A stretch of DNA of 64,000 bases from Anaeramoeba ignava BMAN (GCA_028826165.1 JAPDFW010000011.1:620001-684000); one strand, 5' to 3'. Numbered from the stretch's first letter, positions 1,267-54,984 are shown. Notes: generated from the sequence alone by a model not told the origin. Numbers and translations are program-made.

Positions 1267-2350
1267 TCAAATATCAGCGAATATATCCAATTCAAGAAAA
1301 TTCATCAATTCACTTTGAATATCCTTAACCAAATCCAATTTCCAAACATCATTCAAATGTTTAAAAGAATGTTCACGTTCCATAAATTCACCACCAAAAA
1401 TAATAATTGAATTATTTAAAATAGTTGCATTATGACAACTTCTTCTTGGGATTTTGAAGTAAATTTTTTTCTTTTTCCATTTATTTTCAATCAAATCAAA
1501 CTCAAAGGTTTCATCAAAATCTTCTCTTTTTGAAGATAATCTATATTGCCCGCCGACAATTATCATTCTAGATTTGTAAAGAAGAGCAGTTGGAGAACTA
1601 CAAGGTGGAGGGATAAGAAAATCTGAAGGTAAGATAATTTTCCTCCAATGACAGAAATCCAAAGAATAAGAATAAAGATCATTGAGAGCATCTTCATTTA
1701 AATCAACTCCACCAAAGATGTATATTTGATTTTCAAACAAAACTCCAACATGCGATGATCTTTCTGCTGGCACTTCTCCAAATCCTTTCACTTCTCGCCA
1801 TTTTTTCTCATTTAATGTGTAATACCACATGTCGTTTGTTCGAACTCCATCATGGTTTAATCTTCCTCCAAATATTATCATCTCATCATTGTGGAAAAAT
1901 GCTACATGTGAATGTCTTCCTTTTGGTTCTTGTGGTAGTGATTTCCAATTGTATGTTTTTAAATCAAGTTCAAAAAAATCATCTAAAAAATCAAATATAA
2001 ATTAAATTATAAAATTATTTATAAAATTATTTATAAAAAATACCTAAATAAGAATTCAAATTATAACCACCAAAAACATAAATCTTTCCTTTATTAAACA
2101 AAGTAGTCATTCCATAACGAGGACAAGGAACTTTTCCAGTAGTTTCTAATCTTTTCCAAGAACGAGATTCAATATTTAAAATATGAATATCACTATTACA
2201 ACGGTAGCCACTCCATCCATACATAACTAAAATTTCACTATCACTAATCCCAACAAATCCTGATTTACAAGAATTATCAGGTTGATCAGTTGGATCCATT
2301 TCAACTTTATGCCAATTCCAAATATCAATATCTAATGATTTTTTATCCAT
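1267..2350 (-). CDS. Kelch-repeat beta-propeller protein; 2 exons (2350-2044, 1982-1267)
   Basis: Repeated (I/V)(Y/I)(I/V)FGG...ND.W motifs in ORFs 2027..2350 and 1267..1881. A 61-nt GT-AG intron at 1983-2043 joins them in frame (SYL-D-DFFELD). Confidence 0.88.
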
Positions 2351-2391
2351 TTAAAATTTAGAAAAAAAAAATGAAAAAAAAAATGAAAAAA

Positions 2392-3480
2392 ATTTATAAA
2401 ATTATTTATTAAATTATTTATAAAATTATTTATAAAATTATTTATAAAATTATATATAAAATTATTTATAAAATTATTTATAAATTTATTTATAAAATTA
2501 TTTATTAAATTATTTATAAAATTATTTATAAAATTATTTATAATATTAAATATAAAATTATTTATAAAATTAATTATAAAATTATTTATAAAATTAATTA
2601 TAAAATTATTTATAAAATTATATATAAAATTATTTATAAAATTATTTATAAAATTAAATATAAAATTATTTATAAAATTATTTATAAAATTATTTATAAA
2701 ATTATTTATAAAAATTAAATATTAAATTAATTATAAAATTATTTATAAAATTATTTATAAAATTAAATATAAAATTAATTATAAAATTATTTATAAAAAT
2801 TAAATATAAAATTATTTATTAAAATTATTTATAAAATTATTTATAAAAATTATATATAAAATTATTAATAAAATTATTTATAAAATTATTTATAAAATTA
2901 TTTATAAAATTATTTATAAAATTAAAATTTATAAAATCAATATTTATAAAATTATTTATAAAATTATTTATAAAATTATTTATAAAATTATTTATAAAAT
3001 TATTAATAAAAAATTATTTATAAAATTAAATATAAAAAATTATTAAAAATAAAATTAAATATAAAATTATTTATAAAATTATTTATAAAATTATTTATAA
3101 AATTATATATAAAATTATTAAAATTATTTATAAAATTATTTATAAAAAATTATTTATAAAAAATTATTATATAAAAAATTATTTAAAATTATTTTTATAA
3201 AATTATTTATAAAATTATTTATAAAATTATTTATAAAATTATTTATAAAATTATTTATAAAATTATTTATAAAATTATTTATAAAATTATTTATAAAATT
3301 ATTTATAAAATTATTTATAAAATTATTTATAAAATTATTTATAAAATTAATTATAAAATTATTTATAAAATTATTAATAAATTTATTTATAAAATTATTT
3401 ATAAAATTATTAATAAAATTATTTATAAAATTATTTATAAAATTATTTATAAAATTATTTATAAAATTATTAATAAAATT
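2392..3480. repeat. 12-bp tandem array (ttataaaattat)n
   Basis: About 1.1 kb of near-perfect, almost purely A/T 12-mer between divergent genes. Confidence 0.92.
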
Positions 3481-3637
3481 AATTAATAAATCTTAAAGGA
3501 AATTTCCCAAAAAGATAAAAAAAGGCAAAAAATTAAAAGCAAAAGAAAAAATTTTTTTTAATTTTCATTTTAATTTTTTTCATTTTTTTTCGTTTCTTTT
3601 TTTTTTTTATAAAATAATAATAAAAAAAAACTTGAAA

Positions 3638-6600
3638 ATGCAAAATAACAAAAATCCACTTCATAAAATTTTCGCAATTCATAAAAGTTGGATATACTTA
3701 TTATTAGAAAGAAATACTGATCAAAAAAAACAAAATCTCAAAAAATTCATTCATTTCTTTTATTCAACAATTAAAAACTCAAATATTAAATCAATTCCTT
3801 TACAATTTCCTTTTATTCAAAATTTTTTCAATGAAATGATCAATTATTTGTTATTAGATTTTCAAAAAGCATTAAAAAAAGTTTCAAAATCAAAATCAAA
3901 ATCAAAATCAGAATATTCTTTTGATAATTTTATTCAAAATCAAACAAATTTAGAAATTATGGAAATTATTTATCAATTTACATTAGAAAACAACTTTGTT
4001 TTCAAAGGATTGATTCAAATTCTATTTGCTTCATTAATTCTTTTTTCAGATGCTTCTTCTCCAAATATTCTATTCAAACCAGAAGATTTTCTTGGCGATG
4101 ATTTTGAATCTCAAATCAATCCCCAAAATTTATCACAAAATTCTTTCAATCAATCTCGAATTGATGGTCAAAATTCATTTGTTGTTCTTTCTCTTTTGAT
4201 TTTGGAAAATCTCACTAATATCGATTATCATCTCCAAGAATTTCTTCAAGAACCTCAGCTTTCAAATCTTTTCCATTTAATTGCATCTTCAAAATCACCT
4301 TTTGATGTCACTGCACAAATGCTGAGGATTTTAAAAGCAATTTTTCTCAAGCATCAAAGCTTCAAAAAACTCAACATCAATAAAATTGGCAAAATCAACG
4401 ATATTTCTTCAATTAACTCTGTTATCCGCCATCTTTTGTCTTCAATTTTCCAAATCCATTCAAAACCAATCATAGTCATCAATATTTTCAAGCTGTTTCT
4501 TTTTTCCTTCCAAAATTCATTGATCACATATTTCAGTGAAATATTCCATTCTTTCAGAAAAAACCACGGATATTCCATTTTATATCACACTCTACTTCAC
4601 TTTGCTTCCAGTCAAGAAAGACACCATTTCTTGCATCTGATCTCAATCTCTTTCCAATTTGTTTTTGTTTCTTGTCAGCCTCAAGATTCGGAATTCATCA
4701 TTTTTTCAAAGCAAACATTATGGAACAATTCAACTCAAGAAAAAGATCTCCGATATCTTTATTCAATCAACATGATTCTCCATATTTTCAAAAATCACTC
4801 AATTTCTTGGGAAATTGAAGACAAAATACTTGGGCTGATCGATAACATTCGCGGAATTAATCCAAATATCTATAAACTACTCAATTTTAATATTATTGAT
4901 TTTATTTGCAATAATTTCCAAAACCATAAAAAATCAACTCAAGAAAAAATTTTGGATTTCATCAAATTCTTGATTCTTCTTGATAACAGCTCGTTTAATC
5001 TTAAACCTTATTGCAAACTTCTATCTCCAAAATATAGTGAATCTGTAAGTATTCAAATTGCATTGCATATTGCGGAAATGATTCCTTTGAATCCGAGATT
5101 TGAAGAATATTTGCGAGTTGGAGGAGTTGTCAATTTTATTGTTGCTAGATTTTTATCAGAATGCCAAAAACTCAAACCGTTGATTGATTCTTTTTTGAAA
5201 AATCAATCAAAGCAAGTTTATTCATGATTTTTCTGATTTGTTCATTCAAGATGATTTAAATGAAAATCAAATTAAAAATGAAAATCAAATTAAAAATGAA
5301 AATCAAATTGAAAAACCAAGTTCTTTATTATTAGAAACTTTAATTAGATTACTATACTCAATACTTAAAGCAAACCCTGAAAATATTATTACATTCACAA
5401 AAAAACAAGCAATAAATATAATATCTGATCTTCTAGAAATCCCCAAATTTAGAAATGAAATTTTTACAAATTTTGTTGATCTTGTTCTTGTTGATTCAGA
5501 ATACCTTAGTTTGCTAATTCTTGATTTAATATCAAACTTCTCTAAATCAAATTCATTTCCAAATTTGTTTGTTACAACTTTACAAAAGAGAATTGATATA
5601 CTTTCTTTATTCTCAATATTTGTTGTTTCAGATCAAAAATTCCAAAATGTTTTCAGAGAAAACAATATCTTCTCCATTCTACAGCAAATTTTCACAGAAA
5701 CAACTCAACAATTCACATCATTTTCGTCTGAAGAATACGAAGAAATTGAATATGCATCAATTTCCTTTTGGCTTTTTGTTGATAACGCATTTCGTTTTCT
5801 TGCAATTCTTTTGTATAACAATACAACAAATCAAGAAATTGTCGATCAAGGATGTCCTTTAAAAGATCTTATTGAAGTTCTCAACAAAACTAGAATATTC
5901 GAAAACAAATCAAACTTCATTATTCTTGTGGATTCTCTTATTAATCTTGCATTTACTGGCCAAATACAAAGATTTTATCAATTTACAGAAGAACAAGATC
6001 TGGATATCCAACAAAATATCCCCATTTTCACAAAGAATATGATAGATTTCTTCAAATATCATCTCATTATCCACAATAATTCTGATTCGTTGTTTTCCGT
6101 CACTTCAATTCTTCTAAAATACAACAAAGGATATATTTCGAATTTCTATCAAAACTTCCAAGAAATGAAAAATCACAATTTAAATCAAAATGAATTCCAC
6201 AAAAAACAATTTTCATCTTTGATAGAAATTCTTTTTTATGACAACAAGCATCCAAAACAAAAAATCCCACAAATCGAATTTCCTCAGCTTTGCAATTATG
6301 TTTTCAAAATATTTTCTAAACAAATCAAATCCCAAGTCATTTCCATAGAAACAATTCAGCCCGTGATCGAAAACCTTATACTCTATTCACAACATGAAAC
6401 AAATCGATATTCTGTCGCGAATTCTGCTTTTCTTTCCTCAATATTTGATAAATACTCCAAAATCATAATGGCATCTTCTCATCCTTTACAAGAAAAAATA
6501 TTTCAACTTATCGAACATTTTGGTTGTTGCTCGATTAGTGTTCTTGAAATCAAAAAATTGTTTTCTTTTTTTAAAGAAAAATCCTTTCCAATTAAAATAC

Positions 6601-44676: not shown

Positions 44677-47600
44677 TTATAAAAGAACTTGAATTATTCC
44701 ACTTCGATGAAAATCAGAAACAACAATAAATTCTTCATCAACTAAAACTCTTAAAGAATCAATAAAATCTTCAAAAATAACATTATTATTATTAATATTT
44801 TTCTCAAAAACTTTTTTCCACAAATCATTAATTGAAATTTTCTTAATGGAATTATTAACCAAAAATTGTCTAGCATCTGTAGCAATTGAACCGATAGCAT
44901 TTCTTGAAGAAAAGCTTCTTCCAGTCGTCAAAAGATCCAAATCAATTCTTCCAGTTCTTGGATCAGTAGCTGTTTGTTGAATTGCAACTCGAATCAAACG
45001 AACAGCTTCATCAACATCAATTTTCTCAACATGATTTGATAACCTAATTTTAGCATGAGCTTCGGATATCCTAATCAAAGACTCTAATTGCCGAGGAGTC
45101 GCAGTGATTGTGTTTTTATTCCCTCCAATCTTTCTCATATCGCAATAAGCATTAACAAGAGAAGTAAAAGCTTCATCAGAAATAATTGGTTTACATTTAC
45201 GTTTTGCATATGAAATATATTGAGTCAATGTTTGTTTGTCAATTACTTCCTCGCTTTGAGTTTCTGGTTTTCTCGAATAAAGCGAGAGAATATGATGAGC
45301 AAGTCTGCGATCTTGTTGTTCATTTGGTTTGTCGAAAATCAAGTAAATCAAATCAAATCTTGATAATAAAGTTGGTGGTAATTGAATATTTTCAACAACT
45401 GTTAGTCTTGGATTGTATCTTGAATCTTTTGGGTTTGCTGATGCAAGAACAGATGTTCGCGAATTCAAAGTTGCGATTATTCCTGCTTTGGCAACAGATA
45501 CTGTTTGTTGCTCCATTGCTTCATGAAGAACTGTTCTTGTATAATCACTCATCTTATCAAATTCATCAATACAACATATTCCTCCATCACTTAGAACTAA
45601 TGCTCCGCTTTCGAGTACTAATTCTCTTGAATCAGGATCTTTTGTAATAAATGCTGTTAGTCCAACTGCTGAACTCCCTTTTCCTGATGTGTATACTCCT
45701 CTTGGTGCAATTTTATTTACATATGATAATAATTGTGAATTATGTACAATTATTCCATTCGCAATAAAATTACTTCCTTTGCTTGATTCCAAATCATAAA
45801 CCCAAATTGTTTCCTTTTCTTTCATTTCAATTTTTTTGATTTTTTCTAATTTGAATATTTTTTTAATTTCTTGCTTTTTTAAATTTCTTTTGATAATTGG
45901 AATTTCTTCTTGTTTAAAATCTTCAATTATTATCTTTTCTTTTTTTGTTAAAATTTTTTCAATGTTAAATAAGAATTTAGGATGAATTTTGGATAGTTTG
46001 TTCTTTTTAATTTTGATTTGATAATATTTTTGTTTTTTATAAATTTCATCTTCAAATTCAAATTCAAAATTTTTCTTTTTCTTAATCTTTGTTTGAATCC
46101 CAAATCTTAATAATATCATAAATAATTCTAAAATGAATCTCTTGTTTTTATTTGAATAAATAATTGATTTATTCTTGAATTTTCCTTCTTGAATCAAAAG
46201 AACTTCTAAATAACTTGTAATTATTAAATTTGATGATGTTTTGATAATTTTTGGAATTGATTCATTTTTTTTCAAAGAAAATGAATCTGATAAATTTTGA
46301 TAAATAAATTTGTAAAGATGAGAATTTCTATTGAATTTAACAAATAATTTTTGATAAAGGTTTTTGATTTCCAAATCATTTTGATCAAATTCAGTGTTTA
46401 AAATGTTGGTTATATCATTTAAAATGATTGAATTTTCAGAATCAAAAATTAAATAATATACTTTATCATCAAAAGATCCAAATTTGCTTATAAAATTAAT
46501 ATAAAAATCAATCGAGCCTTTTTGATTGATTAAATTGTTATTTTTTTGTAATGAAATTTCTTGATAATTTTGAATATTTTTTGGAGAAATAATTTTCAAT
46601 CCTTTAAAAAGATCTTTAGCTTGAATTTTATAGATTTTATCATTAAAAGAAGTGAAAAAGGGATGTTCAAGTGTTGATTTAATTGAAATTCCATTTTTAA
46701 GTGTTATTTTTAATAATTGAGAAACTTTTCTTCTTGAAACAGTCGGAACAAATGATTTAACTTGTTTATAATGATTTGTAAATGAAATGATTGAAAGATT
46801 ATTTTTTGAAGCAAATATTCCTTTTGAGAGTTTAATTCCTGAATTTTCATGAAATATTTCTTGAAAAGTTTTTAAATTTCCATCAGATAATTGAATTAAA
46901 GTATCTCCTGTTAAACATTTTGAAGTTCCTGGATCACCAATGATTAAAACATTAATTTCTGATCTGAATCTACCGCCTCCTGAACGACTAAATTCTTTTT
47001 CAGTTCCTGAAAATAGTTGACATAAAACACCTTTTTTAACATCTTCTAAACCCCAAATACTTGGAGCTAATTTTTTTGATTTAAATTTATTTTTAAATTA
47101 ATTTTTGGATTTAATTTTTATTTTTGAATTTTTAAATTAACCTAATGATCTTGTTAAATTTTCATAAATATTTGGTGATTTTCCAAGTTTCTTTAAATTT
47201 TTTTCAAGTTTTTTAATTTGTTCTTCAGTTTGATTCATTTCAACCAAAGTAGAAATATCACCTAAATTAATTCTTCCATCAGAAACCCTATTTTTATCAA
47301 ATTTTCTGAAATGAATTACATCAATATATGTTCTATATATTGATTTAACAGATCTTTTTCTTGGGTTAGTTCTTATTGGAATAGCTCTAAAAATTCCAGT
47401 AAGTTCAATACGGTCACCTGGTCTAACATTTTCAACAAGATCTTCATAACACATTAAATTAACAGTTTGAGGAGTTTCACCATCAGGTATAGCATCTTAT
47501 TTTATTATTTATTTTAAATATTTTAAATATTTATTTTAAATATTTTTTTAATATTTATTTTAAATATTTTGAATATTTATTTTGAATATTTTGAATATTT

Positions 47601-49645
47601 ATTTTAAATATTTATTTTAAATATTTTGAATATTTATTTTGAATATTTATTTTAAATATTTATTTTAAATATTTATTTTGAATATTTATTTTGAATATTT
47701 ATTTTGAATATTTATTTTGAATATTTTAAATATTTTGAATATTTATTTTAAATATTTATTTTGGATATTTATTTTAAATATTATTTTAAATATTTATTTT
47801 GAATATTTTGAATATTTATTTTAAATATTTATTTTGAATATTTATTTTGAATATTTATTTTGAATATTTATTTTAAATATTTATTTTGAATATTTTAAAT
47901 ATTTATTTTGAATATTTATTTTGAATATTTATTTTAAAATATTTTTAAATTTTTGGATATTTATTTTAAATATTTTGATTATTTATTTTAAATATTTATT
48001 TTAAATATTTATTTTGAATATTTATTTTAAATATTTATTTTGAATATTTATTTTGAATATTTATTTTAAATATTTATTTTAAATATTTATTTTGAATATT
48101 TATTTTGAATATTTATTTTAAATATTTATTTTGAATATTTTGAATATTTATTTTAAATATTTATTTTGAATATTTATTTTAAATATTTATTTTGAATATT
48201 TATTTTTAAAATTTATTTTAAAATATTTTTGAATATTTATTTTTAAATATTTATTTTGAATATTTATTTTAAATATTTATTTTGAATATTTATTTTAATA
48301 TATTTATTTTGAATATTTATTTTAAATATTTTAAAATATTTTAATATTTATTTTAAATATTTATTTTGAATATTTATTTTGAATATTTATTTTAAATATT
48401 TATTTTTAAATATTTATTTTGAATATTTATTTTAAATATTTATTTTTAAATATTTATTTTGAATATTTATTTTAAATATTTATTTTGGATATATTTATTT
48501 TAAATATTTTGAATATTTATTTTGAATATTTATTTTAAATATTTATTTTGAATATTTATTTTAAATATTTATTTTGAATATTTATTTTGAATATTTATTT
48601 TGAATATTTATTTTAAATATTTATTTTGAATATTTATTTTAAATATTTATTTTGAATATTTATTTTGAATATTTATTTTGAATATTTATTTTAAATATTT
48701 ATTTTGAATATTTATTTTAAATATTTATTTTGAATATTTTATATATTTATTTTAAATATTTATTTTGAATATTTATTTTGAATATTTTGAATATTATAAT
48801 AATTATTAATCTACCAGGTGTTTCTTGAAGTTTTAAAATTTGTTTATCACTAAATTTGCAACGATTATGTATTAATTCCATTGAAAAACGTTGAGAACAA
48901 TTTGAACAAATTAAAGGTTCACTAATTCTTCCTTTTTGAATTGAAACAACTTCTTCAAAAGAACATTCTTGACATTTAAAAAAAGCTTCTTTAAGATCAG
49001 GAATGATTTGAGATGTTCTTGTAATCATTCCACGAACACAAACAATTTGATCAATATTATTTGGATCAAGATCTCGAAGATTTTTAACATCTGATTCAAG
49101 AAGTCGAAATAATCGAACTTTTATTGGGTTTTTAAATGTTGTTTCATTATCTTCTCCTTGAACAGCTCGGATTTCTGTGCTTAAATCCTTTATAACTAAA
49201 TCAAATATTGTTATTATTTCTTGTGGATATTTTATTGTTTGTTTGTATAAATTTTCATTAAATTGGAAAATATGTTGACAATCAATATTTAATGAATTTT
49301 GTTCTGTTTCAACAACCTATTAAATTTATAAATATTAATATTTAATTTATAAATAATAATTTTGAATCTGTTTTTATTTACTTGTGATAAAATATCAAAA
49401 TAATATGGATTTTCATTTTCATTTCCATTAATTCGGAATTCATCAATAAATTTTCGAAAATTATTAATTGTATCTTCAACATTTATTGTTGTTCCCCAAA
49501 TAACAGTTCTGGAGAATGTTTCTATTTGTGAAGAATTAATTAAAGGTCTATCTAAATCAACTTGATTATTGCTATTATTGTTATTGTTATTATTGTTGTT
49601 GTTGTTATTATTATTATTGTTGTTATTGTTTTCATCTTGTTCCAT
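44677..49645 (-). CDS. MCM4: MCM4 (Cdc21/Cdc54) replicative helicase subunit, intein-containing precursor; introns 49317-49381, 47496-48814, 47067-47141
   Basis: VIWGTTIN, YPQEIITIFD, zinc finger C..C...C..[37 protein letters not shown]|intein|SQLL, YTSGKGSSAVGLTAF, LESGALVLSD.GICCIDEFDKM, HEAMEQQTVSVAKAGI, LLSRFD, TPRQLESLIR and ATDPRTGRIDLD (MCM4-typical). The 5' start is uncertain. Confidence 0.95.
45739..46917 (-). mobile_element. Intein (393 aa) with degenerate LAGLIDADG homing endonuclease, inserted in the MCM4 Walker A motif
   Basis: In-frame insertion with no stops. Block A CLTGDTLIQLSDG, block B KSTLEHPFF (TxxH), AKDLFKG, block F VYDLESSKGSNFIANG, block G IIVHN followed by extein Ser+1. 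Removing it restores GDPGTSKSQLL. Confidence 0.96.
47500..48800. repeat. Intronic 12-bp array (tatttatttt[g/a]a)n
   Basis: Fills the 1319-nt MCM4 intron. Confidence 0.9.
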
Positions 49646-49719
49646 TTGAATAACTGATTCTAAATTTTCTGTTTCAGAATCACTTTGATTTCTTTTTCTA
49701 TTTTATTTTATAAATATTC

Positions 49720-51120
49720 AAATTTTAATTTAATACTTAATTATAAATTTTAAGATTTAATTATTTTAAATAAAATTATTAATTAATATTTATTTAAAAA
49801 TTAATTTAAATTAATTATTTTTAATAAATTTAAATTTTTATTGGAAATAAAATAAATTTAATTATAAATTAAATTTAAAATTTTTTTAAAATTATTAATT
49901 TTTAAATTAAAATTATTTTTTATATTTTTGAATTATTTTTAATTTAAATTTTTATTGGAAATAAAATAGTTTTTAATTTAATATTTAATTATATATTTTA
50001 AGATTAAATTATTTTTAAATAAAATTATTAATTAAATATTAATTTAAAATTGATTTAAATTTTGTTTTATTTTTGGATTATTTTTAATTTAAATTTTTAT
50101 TGGAAATAAAATAAGTTTTAATTTAGTATTTAATTATAAATTTTAAAGATTAAATTATTTTAAATAAAATTATTAATAAATATTAAATTAAAATTAATTT
50201 AAATTTTATTATATTTTTGGATTATTTTTAATTTAAATTTTTATTGAAAATAAAATAAGTTTTAATTTAATATTTAATTATAAATTTTAAGATTAAATTA
50301 TTTTAAATAAAATTATTAATTAAATATTAAATTAAAATTGATTTAAATTTTATTATATTTTGGATTATTTTTAATTTAAATTTTTTTAAAAATAAGTTTT
50401 GATTTAATATTAAATTATAGATTTTAAGATTAAATTATTAATTTAAAATTAATTTAAATTTTATTATATTTTTGAATTATTTTTAATTTAAATTTTTATT
50501 GGAAATAAAATAAGTTTTAATTTAATATTTAATTATAGATTTTAAGATTTAGTTATTTTTAAATAAAATTATTAATTAAATATTAAATTAAAATTTATTT
50601 AAATTTTATTATATTTTTGGATTATTTTTAATTTAAATTTTTTTGAAATTTAAATTTTTAAATTTTGGATTAAATCATTTTAAATAAAATTATTTTAATT
50701 AAATATTTAAAATTGATTTAAATTTTTGGATTATTTTTAATTTAAATTTTTAATAAAAATAAAATAGTTTTGATTTATTAATTATAATTTTAAGATTAAA
50801 TTATTTTAAATAAAATTAATTTAAATTTTTTATTTTTTTGGAATTATTTTTGATTTAAATTTTTAATGGAAATAAAATAAGTTTTGATTTAATATTAAAT
50901 TATAAATTTTAAGATTAAATTATTTTAAATAAAATTATTAATTAAATATTAAATTAAAATTAATTTAAATTTTATTATATTTTGGATTATTTTTAATTTA
51001 AATTTTTTATTGGAAAATAAAATAAGTTTTGATTTAATATTTAATTATATATTTTAAGATTAAATTATTTTAAATAAAATTATTAATTAATATTAAATTA
51101 AAATTAATTTAAATTTTGAA
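49720..51120. repeat. AT-rich satellite, unit about 120-147 bp
   Basis: Recurrent aagattaaattat and ttggaaataaaataagtttt anchors at intervals of about 120-147 bp. Confidence 0.75.
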
Positions 51121-51408
51121 TTGGTTTAATTTTGATTTTTTTATTCATTTAAAATTAATAAAAAAAAAAGAAAATAATTTAAAAGAAATTTAATAAATTG
51201 TTAATAGAAGAAAAAAAGAAAAAAAAAAAAATAAAAAAAAAGAAAAGAAAATTAAAAAATTTTGAAAAAAAAAAAGAAAAGAAAAAAATTTATTTTAATT
51301 TAATTTTAATTTAATTTAACGGTTAATTTAAAAAAAATCGTTAAAAATAATTAATTAAAAAATTCTTTCTTTTTATTTCATTTTTTTTTATTAAAATTTA
51401 TTTAAAAA

Positions 51409-52971
51409 ATGATTGATATTCCATTTGAAACAAATTTAAATTTAAATTTAAATAAAAATTTAAATAAAAATCAAAATAAAAAAAGACAAAGAAGAAAATC
51501 AAAATTTGAAATAAAACCAAATTATGAAGAAACAATTCAAGAAGAGCAACCAATCAAATTAAGAATAACAGATGAAAATCAACCACCAAATCAAAAAGAA
51601 AAAAAACCAAGAACAAAAAGACAAAATCATTATTCAATGAAAATTGTTGTTTCAAAAGAAAATCAAAATGATAAAAAAAAAGAAGAACAAAAATAAATCC
51701 AATAATTTCAAAAAGAAAATGAACAAATACTCAAAATAAATCCAAAAAAAAGACAAAATAATTTTACATTCCAAATTCAAATTCCAACAAAAATATCATC
51801 AAGTCAAAAAAAACAAGAAAATTCACAAGAAGAACAAAAAATAATTGAACAAAAAGAAGAAAATATAAAAGATGATCCATTTTTTGATACAGAAAGTTTA
51901 ATTGATATTGATTCACAAGAAGATCAAGAAGAAAGTTTTGAAGAAAATTTAGAAAATGGAAAAATTCAAGGATTAAGTCGAATTTTTCTTTCAAGTATTT
52001 TGAATTATGGTTCAAAAAATTTTGATAAAGATTCATCACTTATTGAATCAATTACTAAAAATCTTAATCAAGAATTACAAAGTTTTCTTACAAATCGTTC
52101 ATTAAATCTTGAATTATTAAATCAAACTAAAAACACTTTATTAAATTCCAAAGTTGATTTAAAATCAAAAGTATCTTTTGTTAATCTTGAAAATCAAGAG
52201 GACAAAAAAATTCCAAGTTTGAGAATTGAAATTGAAAAGAATTCTTTATTAATGATTCAAATTTTTCTTTGTGGAAGATCATTCCAAAAAGAAAAACATA
52301 ATTGGATTCAAACAAAAATGGATCAAATAATTTTAGATTTACCAATTGTTTTAATTAATACAAAAAAACAAGAATTAATTGAAGAATCAGGAATTCTTGA
52401 ATGGATTCAAAAAAGATTTGATTGTTTGATTCATCCTTTAATATTTAGTCCAAATGAGATTATGAATTTTGTACAATTATGGACACAATATATTTATACA
52501 ATTAAATCAAAAGATTTAAATTCAAAAGCAGAATTATTAAAAGAAAAAAATATAATTGATTTAAAAGAAGAAGAAAATTCAATTGATTTAAAAGAAGAAG
52601 AAAATAATTCTCAAAGATTCATAATCCAAAATTATGAACAAAAAGATTCTCCAATTCAAAAAAAACCTTTTGCAAATCAACAATCTATTGAGTTTGTTTA
52701 TTCAATACCTTTTATTAAAGGAATTGACCAAATCAACTATTTAATTCCTTTAGATCCAATTATTTCTTTAATTGAATCTGGTTTGACTTCAAATGAAATT
52801 ATTGATTTAATTGAAAATAATTTTTATTCTCATTTTAAAATTAAAGTTACAAATCTAAATTTAATTCGTGTTTATTTCCCAGAAATTACAATTAAGAATA
52901 ATGGGAATTTAATATTTAAATGTTCTAATTTTGCAGTTTCTTTTTTATCTCATTTATTTCAAATTATTTGA
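51409..52971 (+). CDS. CENP-L-like kinetochore (CCAN) protein with low-complexity N-terminal extension; two in-frame stops at 51694-51705, probably compensating indels
   Basis: LPIVLIN...GILEWIQKRFDCLIHPLIFS...FVQLW and IENNFYSHFKIKVTNLNLIRVY...NGNLIF resemble recalled CENP-L motifs (LPLFL..G...WFQKTFDC..SPL...W; HF..HFKI.L....LVRV.....DGKIKI). ORFs 51409 and 52000 are in the same frame. Confidence 0.6.
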
Positions 52972-53088
52972 TTTAATATTTTTTTTTGTTTCTTTGTTTT
53001 TAAAAAAAAAAAGATTAAAAAACATTCAAACAAATAAATTCAATTATTTTGTTTTCTTTTTGAATTTGTTTTTTTTTAAAATTTTGTT

Positions 53089-54984
53089 TTAACAACATGA
53101 AGATTTTTCTGATTTTTTTGTAATTGAAGATTCATTTAAAGTTTCAATATCTCTTGGAATTTTTTTTGGAGTTATTGGAATTTTTTTTGCTATTTTTTTT
53201 TAATCAATTCAAAAATAAAAATAAAAATAAAAATAAAAATAAAAATAAAAATAAATTTTCTTTTTACCAATTTCAATAAAAAGATCATCAATATGATCTC
53301 CAGTTTTTGCGGAAGTTTCAAGAAAGATTATTCCTTCATCTCTTGCATAATCTTCAGCAATTTTAATTTTAACTTTTCTTTGTTCTTCCAAATCTAATTT
53401 ATTACCAACTAAAGCAATAATAACATTTGGATCTCCATGTTCTAAAATTTCATTAATCCAATTTTTAGCAATTTCAAAAGTATTCTAAAAAAAACAATTA
53501 AAATTCATTTATAAAATTCAATATTAAAATTAAAATTCAAACCATTTGAGTAATATCATAAACAATTATTGCTGCAACTGCATTTCGATAATACATTGGT
53601 GCAAGACTTCTAAATCTTTCTTGTCCAGCAGTATCCCATATTGAAAAATTTATCATATTATCTCCTACTTTTATTATTCTTTCCATACATTGTGCTATTT
53701 TTTAAATTAATATATTTAAATCAATTTAAATCAATATATTTAAATCAATATATTTAAATCAATATATTTAAATCAATATATTTAAATCAATATGGAATTT
53801 AATAATTTTAAATATATTTAAATCAATATATTTAAATCACTTAAATCAATTTGGAAATCAATATATTTAAATTAATATTTAAATCAATTTTAAATTTAAA
53901 TTAATATATTTAAATTAATATATTTAAATTAATTTAAATCAATATATTTAAATTAATATATTTAAATCAATATATTTTAAATCAATATATTTAAAATCAA
54001 TATATTTAAATCAATTTAAATCAATATATTTAAATCAATATATTTTTAAATCAATTTATTTAAATCAATATATTTAAATCAATTTAAATCAATATATTTA
54101 AAATCAATTTAAATCAATATATTTAAATCAATTTAAATCAATATATATTTAAATCAATTTAAATTATATATTTAAATAAATATATTTAAATTAATATATT
54201 TAAATCAATTTAAATCAATATATTTAAATCAATTTAAATCAATATATTTAAATCAATATATTTAAATCAATATATTTAAATCAATATATTTAAAATCAAT
54301 ATATTTTAAATTAATATATTTAAATCAATTTAGAAATCAATATAGAAATCAATTTAGAAATCAATTTAAATCAATTTTATTTAGAAATCAATTTAGAAAT
54401 TAATATATTTAAATCAATATATTTAAATCAATTTTAAATCAATTTAGAAATCATTTAAATCAATATATTTAAATTAATATATTTAAATTAATATATATTT
54501 AAATTAAATCAATATATTTAAATCAATATATTTAAATCAATATATTTAAACCAATATATTTAAATTAATATATTTAAATCAATATATTTTTAAATCAATA
54601 TATTTAAATCAATATATATGGAAATCAATATATTTAAATTAATTTAGAAATCAAATTAAAAATCAAATTTTAAATCAAATTTTAAATTAATATATTTAAA
54701 TTAATATATTTAAATCAATATATTTAAATTAATATATTTAAATTAATATATTTAAATCAATTTAAAAATCAATTTAGAAATCAAATTGGAAATCAATTTA
54801 GAAATCAAATATATTTAAATCAATTTGGAAATCAAATATATTTAAATCAATTTGGAAACAAACCTCCAATAGTTGATAATTGATAAATAAAAAATTCATT
54901 TTGAGTAAAACGAATTGCAATAGAAGTTTTTCCAACACCAGAATCTCCAAGAATAACAACTTTAGATTCACTTCTATTTTCCAT
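53089..54984 (-). CDS. Rab GTPase, Rab5/Rab22-like; 4 exons
   Basis: [18 protein letters not shown]|[38 protein letters not shown] and a C-terminal SCC* prenylation motif. The first intron (about 1.17 kb) is repeat-filled. Confidence 0.92.
53710..54860. repeat. Intronic ~14-bp array (tttaaatcaatata)n
   Basis: Fills Rab intron 1. Confidence 0.85.

Follow-up and report, generated by a model that had tools for sequence, protein, structure and literature searches.

What is the 393-codon segment that lies between the Walker A lysine and the following serine of an MCM4 gene in Anaeramoeba ignava BMAN, where did it come from, and what, if anything, does it do for its host? The preliminary description of the window (the whole 64,000-nucleotide stretch of DNA analyzed here) had read it as an intein, placing an in-frame insert of 393 codons at 46917-45739 with the junctions GDPGTSK/C…HN/SQLL (slashes mark the ends of the insert). 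Translation and a script reproduced this placement to the base. The minus strand from 47100 to 45600 reads …LIIGDPGTSK/CLTGD…IIVHN/SQLLSYV…, the Cys1 codon occupies 46917-46915, the Asn393 codon occupies 45741-45739, and exactly 393 codons separate the two ends. Directly after the intein-terminal …IIVHN, the C-extein continues as SQLLSYVNKIAPRG…. On the minus strand, the frame of the MCM AAA+ core stays open over 806 codons, intein included; the list of open reading frames opens it late, at TTG 46599, and thereby hides the N terminus of the intein, as had been pointed out before. Within the insert, Pfam matched Intein_splicing (PF14890; E value = 1.3e-14; score of 54.7 bits, cut-off of 35.8), with residues 9-393 covering positions 2-155 of the 155-position profile, and LAGLIDADG_3 (E value = 5e-5). 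The insert splits the MCM P-loop domain into two Pfam matches, at profile positions 13-71 and 68-224.

The base composition and frame of the insert bear on whether it is read through or removed from the transcript. Its own frame contains no stops, compared with 27 to 49 in each of the remaining five frames of the same 1,179 bases, and no open frame survived in 20,000 shuffles of the bases of the intein DNA. The insert begins TGT and ends AAT, that is, without GT..AG. Its GC content is 19.7%, versus 4.5 to 8% in the gene's three introns, and by codon position it is 26.5/19.6/13.0%; the 64-kb window has a GC content of 18.4%, and the genome has one of about 18%. The open frame, the lack of GT..AG ends, and the coding-like GC content with its codon-position gradient argue strongly that the segment is translated and is not an intron. 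We rejected a spliceosomal intron on the basis of the TGT…AAT ends, the GC content, and the open frame set against the stops elsewhere. Contamination by archaeal DNA was also rejected: the insert is flanked by AT-rich eukaryotic MCM4 sequence with introns, on a contig of more than 680 kb.

We modeled the host gene from homology to other MCM4 proteins and from Pfam searches of each exon separately (Table 1). MCM_N, MCM_OB, MCM, and MCM_lid domains were found exon by exon, and the WHD_MCM4 profile was not detected by Pfam in the exon-4 frame. Exon 4 as a whole (47066-44677) consists of the N-extein, the intein, the C-extein, and the stop. MCM_OB resumes across intron 2, with the exons on the two sides at profile positions 85 and 89; this intron is almost wholly made of a 13-nt unit in about 101 tandem copies. 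The frame of exon 1 stays open 5' of the modeled ATG, and the 5' end is thus uncertain; around VIWGT the exon matches the MCM4 of the sister species A. flamelloides (P0109) in an alignment made by eye. The named best matches of the exon-4 frame are mostly MCM4/Cdc54 proteins from many eukaryotes, with 53-70% identity over the extein part; a few other matches have labels that say nothing about identity, and one JGI entry is labeled simply as an MCM protein. Together, the best matches and the domain architecture support a nuclear MCM4 with three GT..AG introns as the host; the preliminary description had proposed an MCM4 gene with three or more introns. Among the MCM matches of the genome, no other intact locus of MCM4 type was found. 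The A. flamelloides protein, named at NCBI an [quoted passage not shown] is an orthologous host that also bears an intein, but that intein lies about 24 residues downstream, in the region GKGSS/…/(S)AVGLTA (site b), and the P-loop GDPGTSKSQ is uninterrupted.

Table 1. Features of the MCM4 gene and of its insert, in positions of the window
Feature	Position	Strand	Remarks
Exon 1	49382..49645	-	Modeled from ATG 49645; GC 22.7%; no Pfam match
Intron 1	49317..49381	-	65 nt, GT..AG, 7.7% GC
Exon 2	48815..49316	-	End of MCM_N (6.9e-12); zinc-finger part of MCM_OB (2.5e-22, profile 2-85)
Intron 2	47496..48814	-	1319 nt, GT..AG, 4.5% GC
Exon 3	47142..47495	-	End of MCM_OB and linker; Pfam 1.3e-09, profile 89-126
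Intron 3	47067..47141	-	75 nt, GT..AG, 8% GC; 50 codons 5' of the intein
Exon 4, N-extein	46918..47066	-	Last residues Walker A GDPGTSK (46938-46918); MCM profile 13-71
Intein	45739..46917	-	393 codons, Cys1 to His392-Asn393
N-terminal splicing (HINT) half	46543..46917	-	Residues 1-125; block A Cys1, block B T82-x-x-H85
LAGLIDADG endonuclease domain	45988..46515	-	Residues ~135-310; probably inactive
Lys/Glu/Ile-rich linker	45856..45987	-	Residues 311-354, replacing the HTH module of archaeal relatives
C-terminal splicing part	45739..45855	-	Residues 355-393; block F V373-Y374-D375, block G H392-N393
Exon 4, C-extein	44677..45738	-	Ser+1 (SQLL…) to stop; MCM 9.4e-88, MCM_lid 2.3e-28

A second genomic copy of the gene lies on contig C17, which begins inside MCM4 at the equivalent of position 44994 and is colinear with the window over at least 9 kb. 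Exons 2 and 3 are identical in the two copies. Exon 4 of the C17 copy differs by one substitution and by eight small indels, most of which alter the length of a homopolymer; a pair of them falls inside the intein and jointly restores the frame. For the C17 sequence, a haplotig, a duplicate, and a contig end that was poorly polished are all conceivable. The intein is present in both copies of the gene (2/2).

The splicing residues of the insert are those of a class 1 intein. Cys1, the block B T-x-x-H motif, the block F Asp, the terminal His-Asn, and Ser+1 had all been named from the raw sequence, and each was recovered by alignment. Against 29 archaeal MCM-a inteins, C1, G13, G76, H85, and P86 are invariant and T82 is nearly so; in the resulting 30-sequence alignment, Cys1, T82/H85, D375, H392-N393, and Ser+1 stand in invariant or near-invariant columns. 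The Cys1/Ser+1 nucleophiles, T-x-x-H, block F Asp, and His-Asn are thus joined by the profile match and by a predicted HINT fold. An alignment-based AF2 model of the intein reached a pLDDT of 82.8 and a pTM of 0.83, and it leans on the alignment of homologues, as a single-sequence model had a pLDDT of 32. By block, the pLDDT was 87-97 across the N-terminal splicing half (mostly above 90) and about 89-94 in the C-terminal part. The top Foldseek matches of the model are endonuclease-bearing inteins, namely, TliVMA (E value = 5.6e-20, TM scores of 0.75/0.80), PI-PfuI, and PhoVMA. One position departs from the usual pattern: Ser382 occupies the column of the second block F His, which is His in at least 90% of the archaeal relatives. 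This second His is helpful to inteins but not universal, and its replacement by Ser could make the C-terminal step slower.

Ser382 and the C17 copy, with its eight small indels in exon 4, could be taken to suggest that the insert is wholly or partly removed at the RNA level or that the locus is a pseudogene whose product never splices. We consider this highly improbable, given that the insert lacks GT..AG ends, that its GC content and codon-position bias are coding-like, and that 393 codons remain open in a genome of such low GC content with the nucleophiles and the key residues of blocks B, F, and G all kept. Moreover, the locus is the only intact one of MCM4 type found among the MCM matches, and the rest of the gene is intact, with 57-70% identity to the MCM4 of other eukaryotes. 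The Walker A function of MCM4 is essential. Because of this, and because no other intact MCM4-type locus was found, the MCM4 intein is expected to splice out of its host. Among Anaeramoeba inteins, the published survey of A. ignava describes actual splicing as demonstrated for three others only (PMC10710043).

Under the reading that we favor, a genuine intein in a nuclear gene, two kinds of splicing would follow each other. The three GT..AG introns would first be removed from the pre-mRNA, and translation would then give a precursor of about 1,169 residues. Cys1 would form the thioester, Ser+1 would attack it, Asn393 would cyclize with the help of His392, and an O-to-N shift would restore the GTSK-SQLL Walker A loop. 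The end product would be an MCM4 of about 776 residues that is capable of binding ATP (both lengths are arithmetic from the exon coordinates only).

The endonuclease of the intein appears degraded. Pfam covers the second LAGLIDADG half only. Motif 1 reads K-F-G, versus G-D/E-G in relatives (aligned in a region of lower confidence, with a pLDDT of 56-63), and motif 2 retains its Glu (Q-E-G); in this alignment, only one of the two LAGLIDADG motifs thus has its catalytic Asp/Glu. AF2 predicted the domain as two alpha-beta subdomains, with a pLDDT of 56-84 in the first and 86-96 in the second. In the linker that follows, residues 324-346 have a pLDDT below 50. Among the archaeal relatives, the P0121 and P0122 inteins have a Pfam HTH_3 domain between the endonuclease and the C-terminal block, where the MCM4 intein is deleted. 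From the half-only Pfam match, the lost motif 1 acid, and the missing HTH module, we infer that the endonuclease has probably decayed and that the element is probably no longer mobile.

We looked for the relatives of the intein in sequence databases. A phmmer search of 1.84 billion representative proteins gave 184 matches (best E value = 4.3e-21), and in both phmmer and blastp the best matches were archaeal MCM-a inteins. The top matches are inteins at GDPGxxK/C…HN/S in long MCM proteins of archaeal type, and they align over the full length, endonuclease included. Identity to archaeal MCM inteins at the same site is 22-33% over the whole length, and the database searches, in which the organism's own records are apparently absent, returned no protein more than about 33% identical to the intein. 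Of ten best matches that were looked up, two carry names, both from Candidatus Micrarchaeota MAGs; partial haloarchaeal MCMs are also among the matches. A total of 113 matches align from residue 1, most of them directly after the Walker A lysine, in hosts that include MCM, SMC/Rad50-like, and translation GTPase-like proteins; these matches form a broad "P-loop intein" family. By sequence, the closest solved structure is that of the PhoCDC21-1 intein, which lies in the P-loop (PMC6801210).

The MCM-a site is defined as lying after the Walker A lysine (PMC10643990), and our insert, like those of the archaeal relatives, immediately follows the Walker A lysine in a helicase of the MCM family. The earlier assignment to the archaeal MCM/CDC21-a site therefore holds. 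The archaeal MCM-a/CDC21-a inteins (PhoCDC21-1 and PabCDC21-1, PDB 6rpq and 6rpp; haloarchaeal inteins; and the Micrarchaeota inteins P0124 and P0140) share with the MCM4 intein the insertion point, a Ser/Thr at +1, and a common block A, B, F, and G pattern. Unlike them, the MCM4 intein sits in a eukaryotic MCM2-7 host with spliceosomal introns, is without HTH_3, has lost the motif 1 acid, carries Ser in place of the block F His, and is strongly biased toward Lys, Asn, and Ile in composition.

A phylogeny against other inteins of this site, proposed in the preliminary description, gave an answer that depended on sampling. In a careful tree of 32 rows, hand-picked from each clade, the intein is nested in the archaeal MCM-a clade with support of 98/99. 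In a quick tree of 75 rows, it still belongs to the P-loop family but lies immediately outside the clade of archaeal MCM-a inteins, with a branch length of about 2.5, in a weakly supported group with two P-loop inteins from SNF2-like helicases of the same genome. The intein has a very long branch and a biased composition, and its placement shifts with the sampling. These results indicate that the MCM4 intein is probably, though not robustly, to be regarded as allelic to the archaeal MCM-a inteins.

We also searched the rest of the genome (a 42.8-Mb assembly of 147 contigs), which is reported to be 80.65% A+T (Jerlström-Hultqvist et al., PMC11550330), and found matches to intein profiles in at least 38 places and at least 25 inteins. 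One of these is a 351-residue insert that splits Prp8 domain IV at …AKWK/C…HN/TAEE…; this AKWK/TAEE position is reported as a new site, Prp8-f, in A. ignava BMAN (PMC10710043). The other MCM loci vary at the position that is interrupted in MCM4. The P-loop is uninterrupted at C80, an intron lies a few codons 3' of the K/S site at C66, and a 177-nt GT..AG intron lies exactly at K/S, with no intein there, at C85. The remaining four (C67, C106, C71:176k, and C71:950k) all have an intein at K/C (4/4), and two MCM paralogues, on C106 and C71, have three inteins each. The four paralogue inteins of this site (site a) resemble one another, the Prp8-f intein, and the site-a intein in the MCM4 of an uncultured GC-rich eukaryote (P0005/P0273), which is VMA/Prp8-like and interrupts Walker A at the same K/S point. 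Such VMA/Prp8-like site-a inteins match Pfam Hom_end_hint, not Intein_splicing and LAGLIDADG_3 as the MCM4 intein does.

The four paralogue site-a inteins had no significant similarity to the MCM4 intein (E value > 1), and the branch between them has 100% support in both the 75-row and the 32-row trees. By these two measures, two intein lineages with no relation to each other share a single insertion site within the MCM family of this genome, and the archaeal-like one is found in MCM4. This fits the published evidence, in the survey of A. ignava inteins, for both independent acquisition and interparalogue transfer (PMC10710043). A separate cross-domain arrival may be imagined, in which an archaeal MCM-a intein, DPANN- or haloarchaeon-like, homed into the Walker A motif of a eukaryotic MCM2-7 protein independently of the VMA/Prp8-like inteins, perhaps with a lasting role as a conditional brake on activation of the helicase in this anaerobe; taken as a whole, we regard this scenario as quite unlikely.

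The closest relatives of the MCM4 intein within the genome are two inteins of SNF2-like helicases, each inserted after the motif I GK; they are about 30% identical to it over 89-101 residues (E values of 6e-6 and 3e-4). The intein could be viewed as recently copied from another P-loop intein of the same genome, by homing from paralogue to paralogue, and not as a member of the archaeal MCM-a-related lineage. Spread between paralogues and from P-loop to P-loop is reported (PMC10710043), and the 75-row tree places the intein outside the archaeal MCM-a clade and near the SNF2 P-loop inteins, with weak support. A recent copy nevertheless seems unlikely: in the whole-genome search nothing but the intein's own duplicate reached an E value of 0.001, the best in-genome matches have the low and partial identity just given, the MCM site-a inteins lie across the fully supported branch, and the 32-row tree puts the intein inside the archaeal clade.

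We next consider whether the intein might serve its host. As long as the intein is in place, the Walker A loop of MCM4 cannot work, and the preliminary description proposed that conditional splicing could gate replication licensing; splicing might conceivably respond to redox, oxygen, DNA, or cell cycle cues and so gate MCM2-7 loading. Conditional splicing is documented in inteins of other replication and repair proteins, Pho RadA and mycobacterial DnaB among them, and the host is an anaerobe (PMC11550330). However, no sensor is indicated anywhere in the sequence, and an intein-internal disulfide trap is not possible because Cys1 is the only cysteine of the intein; a disulfide from Cys1 to an extein cysteine would be possible. 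Furthermore, the loss of an endonuclease acid and of the HTH module gives the element the look of a selfish insert in decay, and the inteins in about 100 other proteins of the genome fit promiscuous spread better than tailored regulation. A conditional switch is therefore very unlikely in our view; the element is best explained as a selfish insert that is fixed and has probably lost its mobility, and not as a demonstrated regulator.

The locus thus very probably holds a genuine class 1-type intein with a decayed LAGLIDADG endonuclease at the MCM-a/CDC21-a site of nuclear MCM4, which would be spliced from its host and persists as a fixed selfish insert that has almost certainly been catalogued already. 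Gallot-Lavallée et al. (PNAS, 2023) catalogued 103 inteins in A. ignava BMAN (PMC10710043), which fits the earlier statement that Anaeramoeba is an intein-rich exception among eukaryotes. The same catalogue removes the implied rarity and novelty of the MCM4 case, as the published A. ignava set includes MCM paralogues and P-loop inteins (PMC10710043). Our data share with that set a very A+T-rich genome, dozens of inteins, the Prp8-f AKWK/TAEE site, and MCM paralogues with three inteins, which are reported there for MCM6 and MCM8 (PMC10710043). Figure 5C of the survey covers MCM3-9, its legend lists MCM4, and its cluster 1 comprises P-loop inteins (PMC10710043). Given the systematic nature of the survey and this legend, the MCM4 intein is almost certainly one of the 103, and its novelty is correspondingly low.

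In this organism, then, an essential subunit of the eukaryotic replication helicase could bind ATP only once its RNA and then its protein had been spliced, which is a published hallmark of Anaeramoeba. To this our analysis makes modest additions, namely, the archaeal MCM-a inteins as probable nearest relatives, two unrelated lineages at one site, the apparent immobilization of the MCM4 intein, and the near-identical copy on C17. The case also confirms that inteins are recognizable from raw sequence alone, and its details could inform studies of cross-domain and P-loop-to-P-loop homing.

We compared the MCM4 gene of the window with a second copy (L033) at the start of an 80-kb contig, C17, which begins inside the gene. 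Contig and window are colinear, with 90 to 96% identity, and the MCM4 exons are nearly identical except for 8 small indels in exon 4. The main difference between the copies is the intron 2 tandem repeat, which in the window holds about 101 copies of a 13-nt unit, TTATTTTGAATAT (plus strand), at 85% match. The C17 copy may represent a haplotig or a duplicate, or may reflect mis-polishing at the contig end. Upstream of MCM4 lie further tandem repeats of nearly pure A+T sequence with a period of roughly 144 to 145 nt (periods of 255 and 400 were scored too).

Loci in and related to the MCM4 region of A. ignava BMAN
Feature	Location	Strand	Remark
Second MCM4 copy (L033)	G000:C17:1-9000		Compared with window 44994-54451
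MCM4 with intein, P0005/P0273 (L065)	JGI metagenome 3300056759, contig Ga0558719_34639, gene 1758-5546		
MCM4 intron 2 tandem repeat	Window 47497-48787		13-nt unit
A+T tandem repeats upstream of MCM4	Window 49827-51182		About 1.3 kb
MCM paralogue, three inteins (L060)	G000:C106:79900-84100		
MCM paralogue, three inteins (L061)	G000:C71:176500-180100		
MCM paralogue with site-a intein (L062)	G000:C71:950800-953100	Minus	
MCM paralogue without site-a intein (L063)	G000:C85:188100-191400	Plus	

The MCM4 of an uncultured eukaryote with a GC-rich genome and compact genes (P0005/P0273) carries a 324-residue intein of the Hom_end_hint type, inserted at the same Walker A K/S site (site a) as the window MCM4 intein. 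Within the A. ignava assembly, the three inteins of L060 and those of L061 occupy site a, the GKGSS/SSGL region and another position further downstream, in agreement with the BMAN MCM6 and MCM8 genes, for which three inteins apiece have been catalogued (Gallot-Lavallée et al. 2023, PMC10710043).

In L061, reading the sequence by eye suggests an intron some two codons 5' of the intein. The intron of L062 (317 nt, GT..AG, 11% GC) falls precisely at the junction of the Walker A Lys codon with the Cys1 codon of the site-a intein, so that RNA splicing and protein splicing share one codon boundary. L063 lacks a site-a intein and has one at site b, and its Walker A K/S position is the exact place of a 177-nt GT..AG intron. 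This agrees with the published idea that homing is blocked by introns.
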